Notes under the pieces: generated by a model
Database searches by the model: none
The model's input: only the letters and a program-made list of their open reading frames with translations
What the model was told of the DNA's origin: nothing
Part shown: piece after piece, positions 1-6,951 of the stretch
How positions within the stretch are numbered: position 1 is the first letter of the stretch
How the letters are laid out: each line of letters starts with the position of its first letter
Source of the DNA: Octopus sinensis
Lineage: Eukaryota
Direction: 5' to 3'
DNA length: 6,951 nucleotides
Assembly: GCF_006345805.1 (NCBI RefSeq)
Contig: NW_021828850.1
Span: forward strand, 1-6,951
Program-made: the position numbers and the translations under genes

Positions 1-513
1 AATTAACAACTGATGCCGGCAGTTTGTTCCATGTTTGCTGCGTGTGTATGGAGGTGAGGAAATCAGGTGTAGTGTGGCGAATCTCAGAAAGCATGGAAGT
101 TTTGAAGGATGCAGTGCTCAGACAATTAACAACTGATGCCGGCAGTTTGTTCCATGCTTGTGTGTGTATGGAGGGGAGGAAATCAGGTGTAGTGTTGGCG
201 AATCTCAGGAAGCATGGAAGTTTTGTAAGGATGCAGTGCTCCGACAACTAACAACTGATGCCGGCAGGTTGTTCCATGCTTGAGTGTGTATGGAGGGGAG
301 AAAATCAGGTGTAGTGTTGGCGAATCTCAGAAAGCATGGAAGTTTTGAAGGATGCAGTGCTCAGACAATTAACAACTGATGCCGGCAGTTTGTTCAATGC
401 TTGCGTGTGTATGGAGGGGAGGAAATCAGGTGTAGTGTTGGCGAATCTCAGGAAGCATGGAAGTTTTGAAGGATGCAGTGCTCCGACAACTAACAACTGA
501 TGCCGGCAGTTTG

Positions 514-583
514 TTCCATGCTTGTGTGTGTATGGAGGGGAGAAAATCAGGTGTAGTGTTGGCGAATCTCAGGAAGCATGGAA
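514..583. repeat. Perfect 10-bp inverted repeat TTCCATGCTT / AAGCATGGAA (example copy; recurs in monomers carrying the consensus)
   Basis: TTCCATGCTT at 514-523 and AAGCATGGAA at 574-583 (monomer positions 29-38 and 89-98). The arms alternate in orientation every 60/61 bp along the array. Confidence 0.9.
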
Positions 584-3282
584 GTTTTGAAGGATGCAGT
601 GCTCCGACAACTAACAACTGGTGCCGGCAGGTTGTTCCATGCTTGAGTGTGTATGGAGGGGAGAAAATCAGGTGTAGTGTTGGCGAATCTCAGAAAGCAT
701 GGAAGTTTTGAAGGATGCAGTGCTCAGGCAATTAACAACTGATGCCGGCAGTTTGTTCCATGCTTCCGTGTGTATGGAGGGGAGAAAATCAGGTGTAGGG
801 TTGGCGAATCTCAGGAAGCATGGAAGTTTTGAAGGATGCAGTGCTCCGACAACTAACAACTGATTCCGCCAGTTTGTTCCATGCTTGTGTGTGTATGCAG
901 GGGAGGAAATCAGGTGTAGTGTTGGCGAATCTCAGGAAGCATAGAAGTTTTGAAGGATGCAGTGCTCCGACAACTGACAACTGATGCCGGCAGTTTGTTC
1001 CATGCTTGTGTGTGTATGGAGGGGAGAAAATCAGGTGTAGTTTTGGCGAATCTCAGGAAGCATGGACGTTTTGAAGGATGCAGTGCTCCGACAACTAACA
1101 ACTGATGCCGGCAGTTTGTTCCATGCTTGTGTGTGTATGGAGGGGAGAAAATCAGGTCTAGTGTTGGCGAATCTCAGTATGCATGGAAGTTTTGAAGGAT
1201 GAAGTGCTCCAACATTTAACAACTAATGCCGGCAGTTTGTTCCATGCTTGCGTGTGTATGGAGGGGAGGAAATCAGGTGTAATGTTGGCGAATCTCAGGA
1301 AGCATGGAAGTTTTGAAGGATGCAGTGCTCAGTCAATTAACAACTGATGCCGGCAGGTTGTTCTATGCTTGTGTTTGTATGGAGGGGTAGAATTCAGGTG
1401 TAGTGTTGGCGAATCTCAGGAAGCATGGACGTTTTGAAGGATGCAGTGCTCCGACAACTAACAACTGATGCCGGCAGGTTGTTCCATGCTTGAGTGTGTA
1501 TGGAGGGGAGAAAATCAGGTGTAGTGTTGGCGAATCTTAGAAATCATGGAAGTTTTGAAGGATGCAGTGCTCCGACAACTAACAACTGATGCCGGCAGTT
1601 TGTTCCATGCTTGCGTGTGTATGGAGGGGAGGATATCAGGTGTAGTGTTGGCGAATCTCAGAAAGCATGGAAGTTTTGAAGGATGCAGTGCTCCGACAAC
1701 TAACAACTGATGCCTGTAGTTTGTTCCATGCTTGTGTGTGTATGGAGGGGAGAAAATCAGGTGTAGTGTTGGCGAATCTCAGAAAGCATGAAAGTTTTGA
1801 AGGATGCAGTGCTCCGACAATTAACAACTGATGCCGGCAGTTTGTTCCATGTTTGTGTGTGTATGGAGGGGAAGAAATCAGGTGTAGTATTGGCTAATCT
1901 CAGGAAGCATGGACGTTTTGAAGGATGCAGTGCTCAGACAATTAACAACTGATGCCTGCAGTTTGTTCCATGCTTGTGTGTGTATGGAGGGGAGGAAATC
2001 AGGTGTAGTGTTGGCTAATCTCAGAAAGCACGGAAGTTTTGAAGGATGCAGTGCTCAGACAATTAACAACTGATGCCGGCAGTTTGTTCCATGTTTGTGT
2101 GTGTATGGAGGGGAGGAAATCAGGTGTAGTGTTGGCGAATCTCAGAAAGCATGGAAGTTTTGAAGGATGCAGTGCTCAGACAATTAACAACTGATGCCGG
2201 CAGTTTGTTCCATGTTTGCTGCGTGTGTATGGAGGGGAGGAAATCAGGTGTAGTGTTGGCGAATCTCAGAAAGCATGGAAGTTTTGAAGGATGCAGTGCT
2301 CAGACAATTAACAACTGATGCCGGCAGTTTGTTCCATGTTTGCTGCGTGTGTATGGAGGGGAGGAAATCAGGTGTAGTGTTGGCGAATCTCAGAAGCATG
2401 GAAGTTTTGAAGGATGCAGTGCTCAGACAATTAACAACTGATGCCGGCAGTTTGTTCCATGTTTGCTGCGTGTGTATGGAGGGGAGGAAAACAGGTGTAG
2501 TGTTGGCGAATCTCAGAAAGCATGGAAGTTTTGAAGGATGCAGTGCTCAGACAATTAACAACTGATGCCGGCAGTTTGTTCCATTTTTGCGTGTGTATGG
2601 AGGGGAGGAAATCAGGTGTAGTGTTGGCGAATCTCAGAAAGCATGGAAGTTTTGAAGGATGCAGTGCTCAGACAATTAACAACTGATGCCGGCAGTTTGT
2701 TCCATGTTTGCTGCGTGTGTATGGAGGGGAGGAAATCAGGTGTAGTGTTGGCGAATCTCAGAAAGCATGGACGTTTTGAAGGATGCAGTGCTCAGACAAT
2801 TAACAACTGATGCCGGCAGTTTGTTCCATGCTTGTGTGTGTATGGAGGGGAGGAAATCAGGTGTAGTGTTGGCGAATCTCAGAAGGCATGGAAGTTTTGA
2901 AGGATGCAGTGCTCAGACAATTAACAACTGATGCCGGCAGTTTGTTCCATGTTTGCTGCGTGTGTATGGAGGGGAGGAAATCAGGTGTAGTGTTGGCGAA
3001 TCTCAGAAAGCATGGAAGTTTTGAAGGATGCAGTGCTCAGACAATTAACAACTGATGCCGGCAGTTTGTTCCATGCTTGTGTGTGTATGGAGGGGAGGAA
3101 ATCAGGTGTAGTGTTGGCGAATCTCAGAAAGAATGGAAGTTTTGAAGGATGCAGTGCTCAGACAATTAACAACTGATGCCGGCAGTTTGTTCAATGCTTG
3201 CGTGTGTATGGAGGGGAGGAAATCAGGTGTAGTGTTGGCGAATCTCAGAAAGTATGGAAGTTTTGAAGGATGCAGTGCTCAG

Positions 3283-6200
3283 ACAATTAACAACTGATGC
3301 GGCAGTTTGTTCCATGTTTGTGTGTGTAGGGAGGGGGAAATCAGGTGTAGTGTTGGCGAATCTCAGAAAGCATGGAAGTTTTGAAGGATGCAGTGCTCAG
3401 ACAATTAACAACTGATGCCGGCTTTGTTCCATCCTGTGTTGCTGCGTGTGTATGGAGGGGAAGAATCAGGTGTAGTGTTGGCGAATCTCAGGAAGCATGG
3501 AAGTTTAAGGATGCAGTGCTCCGACAACAATTAACAACTGATGCCGGCAGTTTGTTCCATGTTTGCTGTGTGTGGTGGAGGTGGAAGGAAATCAGTGTAG
3601 TGTTGGCTAATCTCAGAAAGATGAAGTTTTGAAGGATTGCAGTGCTCAGACATTAACAACTGATGGGCAGTTTGTTCCATGCTGTGTGTGTATGAAAGGA
3701 GAAAATCAGGTGTAGTGTTGGCGAATCTCAGAAAGCATGGAAGTTTTGAAGATGCAGTGCTCAGACAATTAACAACTGATGCCGGCATTTTTTCCATGCT
3801 TGTGTGTGTATGGAGGGAGGAAATCAGGTGTAGTGTTGGCGAATCTCAGAAAGCATGGAAGTTTTGAAGGATGCAGTCTCAGACAATTAACAACTGATGC
3901 CGGCAGTTTGTTCCATGTTGCTTGCGTGTGTATGGAGGGGAGGAAATCAGGTGTAGTGTTGGCGAATCTCAGAAAGCATGGAAGTTTTGAAGGATGCAGT
4001 GCTTAACATTACAACTGATGCCGGCAGGTTTTCCATGTTGTGTGTGTATGGAGGGGAGGAAATCAGGTGTAGTGTTGGCGAATCTCAGGAAGCATGGAAG
4101 TTTTGAAGGATGCAGTGCTCAGACAATTAACAACTGATGCCCGCAGTTTGTTCCATGCTTGTGTGTGTATGGAGGGAGGAAATCAGGTGTAGTGTTGGCG
4201 AATCTCAGAAAGCATGGAAGTTTTGAAGGATGCAGTGCTCCGAACAATTAACAACTGATGCCGGCAGTTTGTTCCATGTTTGTTTGTGTATGGAGGGGAG
4301 GAAATCAGGGGTAGTGTTGGCGAATCTCAGAAAGCATGGAAGTTTTGAAGGATGCAGTGCTCAGACAATTAACAACTGATGCCGGCAGTTGTTCCATGTT
4401 TGTGTGTGTATGGAGGGGAGGAAATCAGGTGTAGTGTTGCGAATCTCAGAAAGCATGAAAGTTTTGAAGGAGGCAGTGCTCAGACAACTAACAACTGATG
4501 CCGGCAGTTTGTTCCATGTTTGCTGCGTGTGTATGGAGGGGAGAAAATCAGGTGTAGTGTTGGCGAATCTCAGAAGCATGAAAGTTTTGAAGATGCATGC
4601 TCAGACAATTAACAACTGATGCCGGCAGTTTGTTCCATGCTTGCGTGTGTATGGAGGGGAGGAAATCAGGTGTGTGTTGGCGAATCTCAGAAAGCATGGA
4701 AGTTTTGAAGGATGCAGTGCTCAGACAATTAACACTGATGCCGGCAGTTTGTTCCATGCTTGCGTGTGTATGGAGGGGAGGAAATCAGGTGTAGTGTTGG
4801 CGAATCTCAGAAGCATGGAAGTTTTGAAGGATGCAGTGCTCAGACAATTAACAACTGATGCCGGCAGTTTGTTCCATGTTTGTGTGTGTATGGAGGGAGG
4901 AAATCAGTGTAGTGTTGGCGAATCTCAGAAAGCATGGAAGTTTTGAAGGATGCAGTGCTCAGACAATTAACAACTGATGCCGGCAGTTTGTTCCATGTTT
5001 GTGTGTGTATGGAGGGGTGGAAATCAGGTGTAGTGTTGGCGAATCTCAGAAAGCATGGAAGTTTTGAAGGATGCAGTGCTCAGACAATTAACAACTGATG
5101 CCGGCAGTTTGTTCCATGTTTGCTGCGTGTGTATGGAGGGGAGGAAATCAGGTGTAGTGTTGGCGAATCTCAGGAAGCATGGAAGTTTTGAAGGATGCAG
5201 TGCTCAGACAATTAACAACTGATGCCGGCAGTTTGTTCCATGTTTGCTGCGTGTGTATGGAGGGGAGGAAATCAGGTGTAGTGTTGGCTAATCTCAGAAA
5301 GCATGGAAGTTTTGAAGGATGCAGTGCTCAGACAATTAACAACTGATGCCGGCAGTTTGTTCCATGCTTGTGTGTGTATGAAGGGGAGGAAATCAGGTGT
5401 AGTGTTGGCGAATCTCAGAAAGCATGGAAGTTTTGAAGGATGCAGTGCTCAGACAATTAACAACTGATGCCGGCAGTTTGTTCCATGCTTGTGTGTGTAT
5501 GGAGGGGAGGAATCAGGTTGTAGTGTTGGCGAATCTCAGAAGCATGGAAGTTTTGAGGATGCAGTGCTCAACAATTAACAACTGATGCCGGCAGTTTGTT
5601 CCATGTTTGCTGCGTGTATGGAGGGGAGGAAATCAGGTGTAGTGTTGGCGAATCTCAGAAAGCATGGAAGTTTTGAAGGATGCAGTGCTTACAATTAACA
5701 ACTGATGCCGCAGTTTGTTCCATGTTTGTGTGTATGGAGGGGAGGAATCAGGTGTAGTGTTGGCGAATCTCAGGAAGCATGGAAGTTTTGAAGGATGCAG
5801 TGCTCAGACAATAACAACTGATGCCGCAGTTTGTTCCATGCTTGCGTGTGTATGGAGGGGAGGAAATCAGGTGTAGTGTTGGCGAATCTCAGAAAGCATG
5901 GAAGTTTTGAAGGATGCAGTGCTCAGACAATTAACAACTGATGCCGGCAGTTTGTTCCATGTTTGTGTGTGTATGGAGGGGAGGAAATCAGGTGTAGTGT
6001 TGGCGAATCTCAGAAAGCATGGAAGTTTTGAAGGATGCAGTGCTCAGACAATTAACAACTGATGCCGGCAGTTTGTTCCATGTTTGTGTGTGTATGGAGG
6101 GGAGGAAATCAGGTGTAGTGTTGGCGAATCTCAGAAAGCATGAAAGTTTTGAAGGATGCAGTGCTCAGACAATTAACAACTGATGCCGGCAGTTTGTTCC

Positions 6201-6534
6201 ATGTTTGCTGCGTGTGTATGGAGGGGAGGAAATCAGGTGTAGTGTTGGCGAATCTCAGAAAGCATGAAAGTTTTGAAGGATGCAGTGCTCCGACAACTAA
6301 CAACTGATGCCGGCAGTTTGTTCCATGCTTGCGTGTGTATGGAGGGGAGGAAATCAGGTGTAGTGTTGGCGAATCTCAGAAAGCATGAAAGTTTTGAAGG
6401 ATGCAGTGCTCCGACAACTAACAACTGATGCCGGCAGTTTGTTCCATGCTTGCGTGTGTATGGAGGGGAGGAAATCAGGTGTAGTGTTGGCGAATCTCAG
6501 AAAGCATGAAAGTTTTGAAGGATGCAGTGCTCAG
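3283..6534. repeat. Higher-order duplication: monomers 28-40 (3283-4843) correspond to monomers 42-54 (4963-6534), 14-monomer period
   Basis: Rare variants recur in the same order at an offset of about 1681-1686 bp: TCAGGA 3488/5170, GGCTA 3605/5286, TATGAA 3691/5377, GTGCTT 3999/5685, TCAGGA 4085/5770, CATGAAA 4454/6139 and 4577/6263. The +3 variant occurs in M29/43, M30/44, M33/47 and M38/52. Confidence 0.85.
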
Positions 6535-6716
6535 ACACAATTAACAACTGATGCCGGCATTTGTTCCATGCTTGTGTGTGTATGGAGGGGAGAATATCAG
6601 GTGTAGTGTTGGCGAATCTCAGAAAGCATGAAAGTTTTGAAGGATGCAGTGCTCGACAATTAACAACTGATGCCGGCAGTTTGTTCCATGCTTGCGTGTG
6701 TATGGAGGTGAGGAAA

Positions 6717-6834
6717 TCAGGTGTAGTGTTGGCGAATCTCAGAAAGCATGAAAGTTTTGAAGGATGCAGTGCTCAGACAATAACACTGATGCCGGCAGTT
6801 TGTTCCATGCTTCAGCAACTTCACACGTGAAAAA
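6717..6834 (-). mobile_element. Degenerate C-terminal fragment of a CR1/L2-type non-LTR retrotransposon ORF2, spanning the flank and the terminal repeat unit; putative parent of the satellite monomer
   Basis: Minus-strand translation from 6834 gives FFTCEVAEAWNKLPASV. In intact monomers it continues VNCLSTASFKTSMLSEIRQHYT*, with TGA at plus-strand TCA 6717-6719 in this copy. The spacing FF-x7-W-N-x-L-P-x2-V-V-x3-S-x3-F-K matches the CR1-clade ORF2 C-terminal motif as I recall it (pattern like FFSNRVVNAWNSLPxxVVxAxSxxxFK). This copy has two 1-bp deletions at about 6780-6786 and an in-frame TGA just upstream (6835-6837). Not confirmed by a search. Confidence 0.6.
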
Positions 6835-6951
6835 TCATATAGGAAATGAATAGAGAAAATTAATTTGGTGGATTATTACAATACATAGTACAACAGGTCA
6901 CATATCGACAAATGGAAACTTGAAATTTCGAAGGAAATTATGATGTGCGCC
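6813..6951. other. Unique AT-rich flank; no ORF; the first ~22 bp are probably LINE-derived
   Basis: It does not match the monomer. The minus-strand frame continuing from the array has stops at 6835-6837 and 6898-6900. Confidence 0.8.

Follow-up and report, generated by a model that had tools for sequence, protein, structure and literature searches.

A 121-bp octopus satellite array in register with an apparently 5′-truncated CR1-like LINE copy

Organisation of the locus

The window (the whole stretch of octopus DNA analysed, 6,951 nucleotides) is filled by one tandem array and, at its high-coordinate end, a short flank (Table 1). TRF reports this array and no other. The array consists of the near-identical head-to-tail monomers expected of a satellite derived from a transposable element (TE), with 56.3 copies at 93% matches; it reaches position 1 and leaves the window there, so that the copy count is a lower bound of at least 56.

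Table 1. Coordinates of the array, of representative units and of the flank within the window
Feature	Position	Strand	Description
Satellite array	1–6812	minus = LINE sense	Period 121 bp, 56.3 copies, 93% matches (TRF)
Coding part of one clean unit	5396–5488	minus	Last 31 codons of LINE ORF2, AWNKLPASVVNCLSTASFKTSMLSEIRQHYT
Stop and 3′UTR of the same clean unit	TGA 5395–5393; UTR 5392–5370	minus	~23 nt of UTR, TTTCCTCCCCTCCATACACACAC; aligned to LINE
Unit adjoining the flank	6694–6812	minus	119 bp
AAGCATG, 7-nt word bounding every monomer	6806–6812	minus	(G)AAGCATG occurs twice in the parent LINE
Leftover LINE ORF2 upstream of the array	6813–6834	minus	22 bases; with AA at 6812–6811, codons FFTCEVAE
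Non-LINE flank	6835–6951		117 bases; in-frame TGA 6837–6835; no LINE or repeat similarity

Units were listed by cutting the minus strand at AAGCATGGAAC. They range from 116 to 128 bp; most are 121 bp and a 124-bp variant is common. A clean unit reads, on the minus strand, AWNKLPASVVNCLSTASFKTSMLSEIRQHYT, TGA, TTTCCTCCCCTCCATACACACAC and then the start of the next unit. G+C content is ~46% in the array versus 33% in the flank (139 bases, 6813–6951). The 124-bp variant, which ends in …ACACGCAGC joined to AAACATGG, alternates with the 121-bp unit over 2218–3078 and elsewhere, forming a 245-bp higher-order unit. Between 3330 and 6000, one-base insertions and deletions are many, often within short homopolymers, and single-base deletions number 1.5–2.8 per unit versus ~0.1 over 1–3330. 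These indel-rich units could reflect a noisy long-read consensus or real decay.

The array stops abruptly. On the plus strand the repeat (…gttccatgctt) continues through 6812, after which the sequence diverges. A search of the 139-base flank for a decayed repeat copy returned none on either strand: the best local score was 18, within a shuffle null of 16.2 ± 2.3, and the flank was accordingly rejected as a degenerate part of the array. Since the flank carries no residual similarity to the unit, the edge is sharp, as the original prediction had described it.

Read on the minus strand in frame 0, the edge is crossed by an open frame (…SFPI, a stop and FFTCEVAEAWNKLPASV). The stop is TGA at 6837–6835; it is followed by TTT TTC ACG TGT GAA GTT GCT GAA at 6834–6811 (FFTCEVAE) and, from 6810, by GCA TGG AAC AAA CTG CCG GCA (AWNKLPA). 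Every codon of this reading agrees with the one first proposed from the sequence. A single occurrence of the pattern TTTTTCACGNNNNNAGTTGCTGAAGCATGG is seen in the window, against 0 expected, and both Octopus vulgaris LINE copies described below have it as well. A TRGH-like motif is absent from the flank in all frames, again as had been reported, and the bases just outside 6835 read …CCTATATGA. In the unit that adjoins the flank, the frame is lost after AWNKLPASV through two single-base deletions.

Repeat units were also said to carry a different segment upstream of AWNKLPA, and TPDFLPSIHTQ is indeed seen there. The arithmetic of the unit explains this segment: 121 is 3 × 40 + 1, so that the end of each unit is read in the frame of the next AWN. 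TPDFLPSIHTQ is the stop codon of the LINE and the 3′UTR bases that follow it, translated in a shifted frame.

The parent LINE

Two protein searches returned nothing. A word-indexed search with a 44-aa peptide spanning the junction gave no candidates, and a search with a 96-aa antisense ORF of the array gave no match; ORFs of the array are therefore absent from the protein collection, and other arrays cannot be found by that route. Exact scans of metagenome and viral contigs with a 26-mer of the repeat gave 0 matches. An 18-mer gave 31 metagenome matches, all of which were dismissed as chance seeds.

An exhaustive HMMER search with the repeat peptide was productive. Its profile, from which the flank columns had dropped out, comprised only the 31 repeat-encoded positions. 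The search for the parent was thus blind to the flank, which makes it an unbiased test of what lies beside the array. Four of the seven matches are C-termini of LINE ORF2 proteins, to which the coding part of the repeat unit aligns with E-values of 6e-13 to 1e-9. One of the four (P0005; CAI9742694.1, O. vulgaris, assembly GCA_951406725.2) ends in …HLSNTYGHIYKVRKQHSSHDFRKHFFTLRVAEAWNKLPASVVSCRSTASFKTS. The O. vulgaris parent ORF2 tail reads …NTRGHxYKVRKQHSSHDFRKHFFTLRVAEAWNKLPASVV…QHYT followed by the stop, or, as a motif, NTRGHxYKVRKQH..DFRKHFFTLRVAEAWNKLPASVV.C..ASFK.SMLP. A second search with this tail yielded 14 ORF2 relatives, and all those that cover the region read KHFF(T/S)LR(V/I)AE(A/T)WNKLP. 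One relative (P0008, 410 aa) carries a reverse transcriptase domain (PF00078, RVT_1) upstream in the same ORF and the same tail at its end; RVT_1 itself is not in the window. UniRef names for the relatives include ‘jockey-like’ and ‘Tick transposon’.

The C-terminus of ORF2 in CR1-group elements (chicken and turtle CR1, L2) has the form …TRGH..K...FF..RV...WN.LP..V....FK…. The parent ORF2 shares the TRGH..K and FF..RV...WN.LP motifs with this group, and both are present in all of the ORF2 relatives. The window, by contrast, has only FFTCEVAEAWNKLP of these motifs; of the ORF2 tail it keeps FF...V..WNKLP...FK and the stop. Two copies of the LINE align at their 3′ ends to …ACAATAATTTCATTA, after which comes a (TTA)n-like stretch and not poly(A) in the two ends seen. 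By its sequence, then, the parent is a reverse-transcriptase-bearing LINE with CR1-type tail motifs. Its assignment to the CR1 clade is plausible at the level of motifs, RVT_1 and the non-poly(A) tail. Cephalopod genomes are about two-thirds repeats, and 13 CR1 families are reported to have been recently active in O. vulgaris (PMC13282606).

One of the O. vulgaris loci used for comparison (L001, OX597841.1) holds two 5′-truncated LINE copies head to tail at 10127–10945. Copy 1 ends in its 3′UTR at …GTATCTGAC and the 5′ end of copy 2 follows immediately; no target-site duplication was found around this composite. The surroundings of these LINE copies contain 84-bp periodic C2H2 zinc-finger gene arrays (4261–4982, 8822–9601 and 14143–14948), which match the known expansion of zinc-finger genes in octopus.

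Continuity of the flank with the LINE

The O. vulgaris LINE DNA corresponding to the junction (L001 10671–10700; L006, a second locus described below, 10643–10672) reads TTTTTCACGCTGAGAGTTGCTG joined to AAGCATGG, whereas the minus strand of the window reads TTTTTCACGTGTGAAGTTGCTG joined to AAGCATGG. The junction sets a single register, in which flank and LINE share 17 of 22 bases (binomial P = 8.6e-7); among 37,150 22-mers from unrelated octopus DNA, agreement with the LINE is never higher than 14/22. At the protein level, FFTCEVAE and the LINE consensus FFTLRVAE agree in six of eight residues. Beyond 6834 identity drops to 11/38, the background level, and local alignment of 6837–6951 to the LINE scores 19–20 against a null of 19.0 ± 2.4. 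Further LINE homology upstream in the flank, including a frame-shifted YDF to be set against HDF, was discarded on the same background identity.

The five differences between flank and LINE are contiguous (6820–6824, TGTGA versus CTGAG, turning codons L,R into C,E). Neither a simple inversion nor a single indel accounts for the block. Its appearance suggests a single complex mutation or an error in the consensus more than general divergence; a different LINE subfamily is another candidate cause.

The alignment confirms, more strongly than the sequence of the window alone could, that the flank from 6834 to 6813 continues the ORF2 of the parent LINE. The array thus has its parent element in register on the 5′ side (17/22 bases, 6/8 residues). 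The LINE copy itself is 5′-truncated at ~6834, and the NTRGH..KVRKQ motif of the parent is missing from the window because of this truncation. The original prediction had proposed such a continuation of the reading frame over about 22 bp and the attachment of this end of the array to a 5′-truncated LINE copy. Both proposals stand, and the length is exact. The parent agrees with the flank and not, as the prediction had allowed for, with the units' own upstream segment, since DFLPSIHTQ is the LINE stop and 3′UTR (TGATTTTCTCCCCTCCATACACAC) in a shifted frame.

A trivial account of the junction would be that the resemblance is due to chance or that the assembly was misjoined at 6812. The stretch of homology is only 22 bases long, a block of five mismatches lies beside the join, and the indel-rich units suggest a noisy long-read consensus. 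Yet the match has a probability of ~1e-6 in a single, pre-specified register, the pattern, unique within the window, recurs in each of the two O. vulgaris LINE copies, and a misjoin would not fall in perfect LINE register. We regard this account as very improbable.

Breakpoints of the monomer in the parent LINE

Units of the array are collinear with L001 10693–10813, part of the O. vulgaris LINE, and 85–96% identical to it (mostly 90–96%). Within the monomer, the final 96 nt of ORF2 are followed by the TGA stop and by ~25 nt from the start of the 3′UTR. The monomer is an internal segment of the element, because the 3′UTR runs ~125 nt past it to …ACAATAATTTCATTA and the (TTA)n-like tail; this longer UTR also rules out a position of the monomer at the very 3′ terminus of the LINE.

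Both boundaries of the monomer can be read in the parent. In copy 2 of L001, GAAGCATG occurs at 10692–10699 within ORF2 (…GTTGCTGAAGCATGGAAC…) and again at 10813–10820 within the 3′UTR (…ACACACAGAAGCATGTATCTGAC…), exactly 121 bp from the first. The joint between units, …ACACACGC followed by AAGCATG and GAAC, is the LINE UTR up to AAGCATG continued by the ORF2 sequence that lies after AAGCATG. In copy 1 the UTR counterpart of this joint is ACACACGCAAGCATG. Outside the array, the 22 bases at 6834–6813 correspond to those that come before the upstream AAGCATG in the LINE. The UTR word is intact in two of the three O. vulgaris copies seen, and the third has AAACACG. By our own arithmetic, an identity of 7–8 nt at both breakpoints would arise by chance at ~6e-5 per position pair. 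In at least ten LINE tails seen elsewhere, the segment is present once.

These observations point to the AAGCATG words as the putative site of the first duplication, which would have been microhomology-mediated. We consider it quite probable that the window represents a 5′-truncated CR1-like octopus LINE copy, within which the internal 121-bp segment was amplified to at least 56 copies. The proposed course of events would begin with a 5′-truncated CR1-like LINE copy, from O. vulgaris or a close relative, at the locus. This parent would carry two AAGCATG words 121 bp apart, with TTTTTCACG......GTTGCTG upstream of the first. A microhomology-mediated template switch, replication slippage or unequal exchange between the two words would have produced the first duplication. 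Unequal exchange or replication slippage at the locus may then have expanded the array to more than 56 copies and generated the 121/124-bp alternation and the homogenised variants. The far end of the array, off the window, would continue into AAGCATGTATCTGAC…, the rest of the UTR and the (TTA)n tail. Under this course the ‘sharpness’ of the edge at 6812 reflects the lack of any joining event at that point, since the LINE merely runs on as the first unit.

The interior of the array can be compared with this proposal. LINE-like variants (AGTTGTCGGAGC, CTTCCTGAG and GATTTTCT; at most 96% identity to the LINE) lie at 1–1700 and 6207–6451, and the middle of the array consists of homogenised derived variants. 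LINE-like ends around a homogenised middle fit growth by unequal exchange. Unit subtypes marked by AATTGTCTGAGC and by the LINE-like AGTTGTCGGAGC are spatially segregated.

A second LINE-joined array

Arrays of the 121-bp repeat are seen at two loci, the window and an O. vulgaris locus (L006, CATOCA020000001.1) that was reached via the protein P0016. The LINE copy at L006 starts at ~10115, ~550 bp upstream of the repeat, and passes, without a change of register, into an array of the 121-bp unit with 6.9 copies (10665–11495, 93% matches). Its flank is the LINE consensus TTTTTTCACGCTGAGAGTTGCTG (FFTLRVAE) and not FFTCEVAE. The different flank and the other 5′ truncation point make this a different LINE copy from that of the window.

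The original prediction went further than the structure of the edge: it took the LINE-joined edge as a sign that the satellite was born at this locus, and expected such an edge only at the founder or at co-mobilised copies. L006 does not bear this out, as it shows the same join in an independent LINE copy with a different truncation point; a junction with the parent element is thus not unique to the window. Nor is a LINE-joined edge a mark of the founder, because any expansion within a LINE, or any retrotransposed LINE that bears an array, will show one.

The window might nevertheless be the single founder locus from which all other arrays derive. Its flank is truly LINE, and the units closest to the LINE (at most 96%) lie inside its array, at the low-coordinate end. 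Against this, L006 has the same repeat next to a longer stretch of LINE that belongs to that locus, with FFTLRVAE as its flank, and a LINE-joined edge, being expected for any in-LINE expansion, cannot establish founder status from one junction. We therefore hold a single founder at the window to be improbable. The same join at two loci means either that arrays originate more than once within LINE copies or that LINE copies carry them along. The array of the window grew inside, or arrived with, a 5′-truncated LINE copy, and is one of at least two such loci; the sequence of the window alone does not single it out as the place where amplification started.

Amplification in place or arrival as cDNA

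The structure of L006 bears on this choice. Two kinds of joint occur within its short array: ACACACAC joined to AAGCATGG, and ACACGC joined to TGAAGCATGG (123 bp), for the second of which the 7-nt microhomology alone is an insufficient explanation. The array directly abuts the 5′-truncated tail of a different CR1-like LINE (…VRVADPWNKLPDEMV…, with an (AACT)n tail), and no remainder of the first LINE lies downstream of it. The heptamer TTACTAC is present at 10108–10114 and 11888–11894, precisely where the composite begins and ends, an arrangement with a chance probability of ~1.8%. This suggests that TTACTAC is a candidate 7-bp target-site duplication and that L006 (10115–11900) is one chimeric insertion.

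Such an insertion raises the alternative that the repeats of the window were made, or already existed, at the level of RNA or cDNA, so that the window holds a retrotransposed daughter and not a birthplace. Reverse transcriptase (RT) would either return again and again from the upstream AAGCATG to its downstream counterpart, or copy a LINE transcript that already holds repeats. The composite at L006 favours this route: a 5′-truncated LINE with 6.9 units abuts a different LINE tail with nothing left of the first LINE, its candidate target-site duplication would imply one chimeric cDNA insertion, and several joint types coexist within one short array. At L001, likewise, a LINE is cut in its 3′UTR and abutted head to tail by another copy.

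The variants of the two arrays are informative in both directions. Two non-singleton transversions, AAAACGTCC and GATTAGCC, are common to the window and L006. For three non-singleton variants shared between the arrays, P is 0.006. Since one of them represents the ancestral state of the LINE, we ourselves put the probability for the other two at ~0.04. The two transversions are a weak hint of common descent or of exchange between the arrays. On the other side, no derived substitution that is fixed in one of these arrays was found in the other; each has its own.

Other features also speak against arrival as cDNA. If cDNAs are truncated at points scattered over their length, a cut just 22 nt above an array of at least 6.8 kb would be coincidental. 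The candidate target-site duplication is short and of low complexity, and none was found at L001. At least ten other LINE tails, moreover, hold the segment once. Taking both sides together, we think arrival of the window's array by this route unlikely, though it is the strongest competitor of amplification in place, which we continue to prefer.

A more general proposal is that the LINE's own RT makes the satellite. During target-primed reverse transcription (TPRT), it would slip repeatedly from the upstream to the downstream AAGCATG and so produce tandem-repeat cDNAs that are inserted in 5′-truncated or chimeric form. If this were true, seeds would exist at many loci and some would later grow into long arrays such as that of the window. 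We offer this as a speculation, somewhat more doubtful than the arrival of the window's array as cDNA.

Tandem and inverted LINE tails at other loci

Related arrangements were noticed in passing. On an unrelated contig (L007, ENA ERZ27284690), an 87-bp unit is repeated 2.2 times in tandem at 1393–1580 and encodes the corresponding region of another CR1-like ORF2 (FWNKLPQVVVDQTSLYAFKT); the proteins P0007, P0009 and P0006 go with this observation. Another repeat protein, P0006, has units of the form SVQNCARQAQFKT. Tandem duplication of the CR1-like ORF2 tail region seems to recur. At a further locus (L002, ENA ERZ27277065, 95–370), an inverted partial LINE tail adjoins the forward tail of a related subfamily (~80% identical), and the ‘protein’ called there (P0004) is a read-through of the inverted and forward tails.

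Comparison with known systems

Satellites built from segments of TEs, including parts of LINE ORFs and UTRs, and the expansion of short arrays within TEs are well documented (PMC12628747, PMC9659126, PMC6947457), and a plant case has been described (PMC7004042). Models in which microhomology, NHEJ or NAHR gives rise to TE-derived satellites have been reviewed (PMC12628747). The literature searched yielded no report of an octopus satellite of the LINE-derived kind and no paper with the monomer sequence, and satellites are not mentioned in the survey of O. vulgaris CR1 families (PMC13282606).

The present case is a clear, ordinary transposon-derived satellite. Its monomer is a subsegment of a TE, a short array lies within a TE (6.9 copies at L006) and a long array occurs elsewhere (at least 56 copies in the window), as in other satellites of this kind. 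A first duplication at microhomology followed by unequal exchange is, too, the standard model. Two features set it apart. Here both breakpoints are legible in the parent, as a direct repeat of 7–8 nt one monomer apart, and the edge of the window's array has kept the register of the LINE. No general concept is changed by a LINE-derived octopus satellite. It nonetheless provides a base-level example of how a satellite starts, with the founding breakpoints readable in the parent LINE and the array in register with it. The two loci, with seven copies inside a LINE at one and at least 56 in the window at the other, form a testable system in which repeated birth in place can be set against spread by retrotransposition.

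A second comparison is with insertions made by template switching. For L1- and R2-type elements, head-to-tail and chimeric LINE insertions that result from template switching by reverse transcriptase are known. The octopus loci resemble these in that copies 1 and 2 of L001, and the first and second LINE of L006, are joined tail to head inside the 3′UTR, and in that the L006 composite has a candidate target-site duplication. They differ in that template switching would here have the added role of making 121-bp repeats, a role that we only infer.
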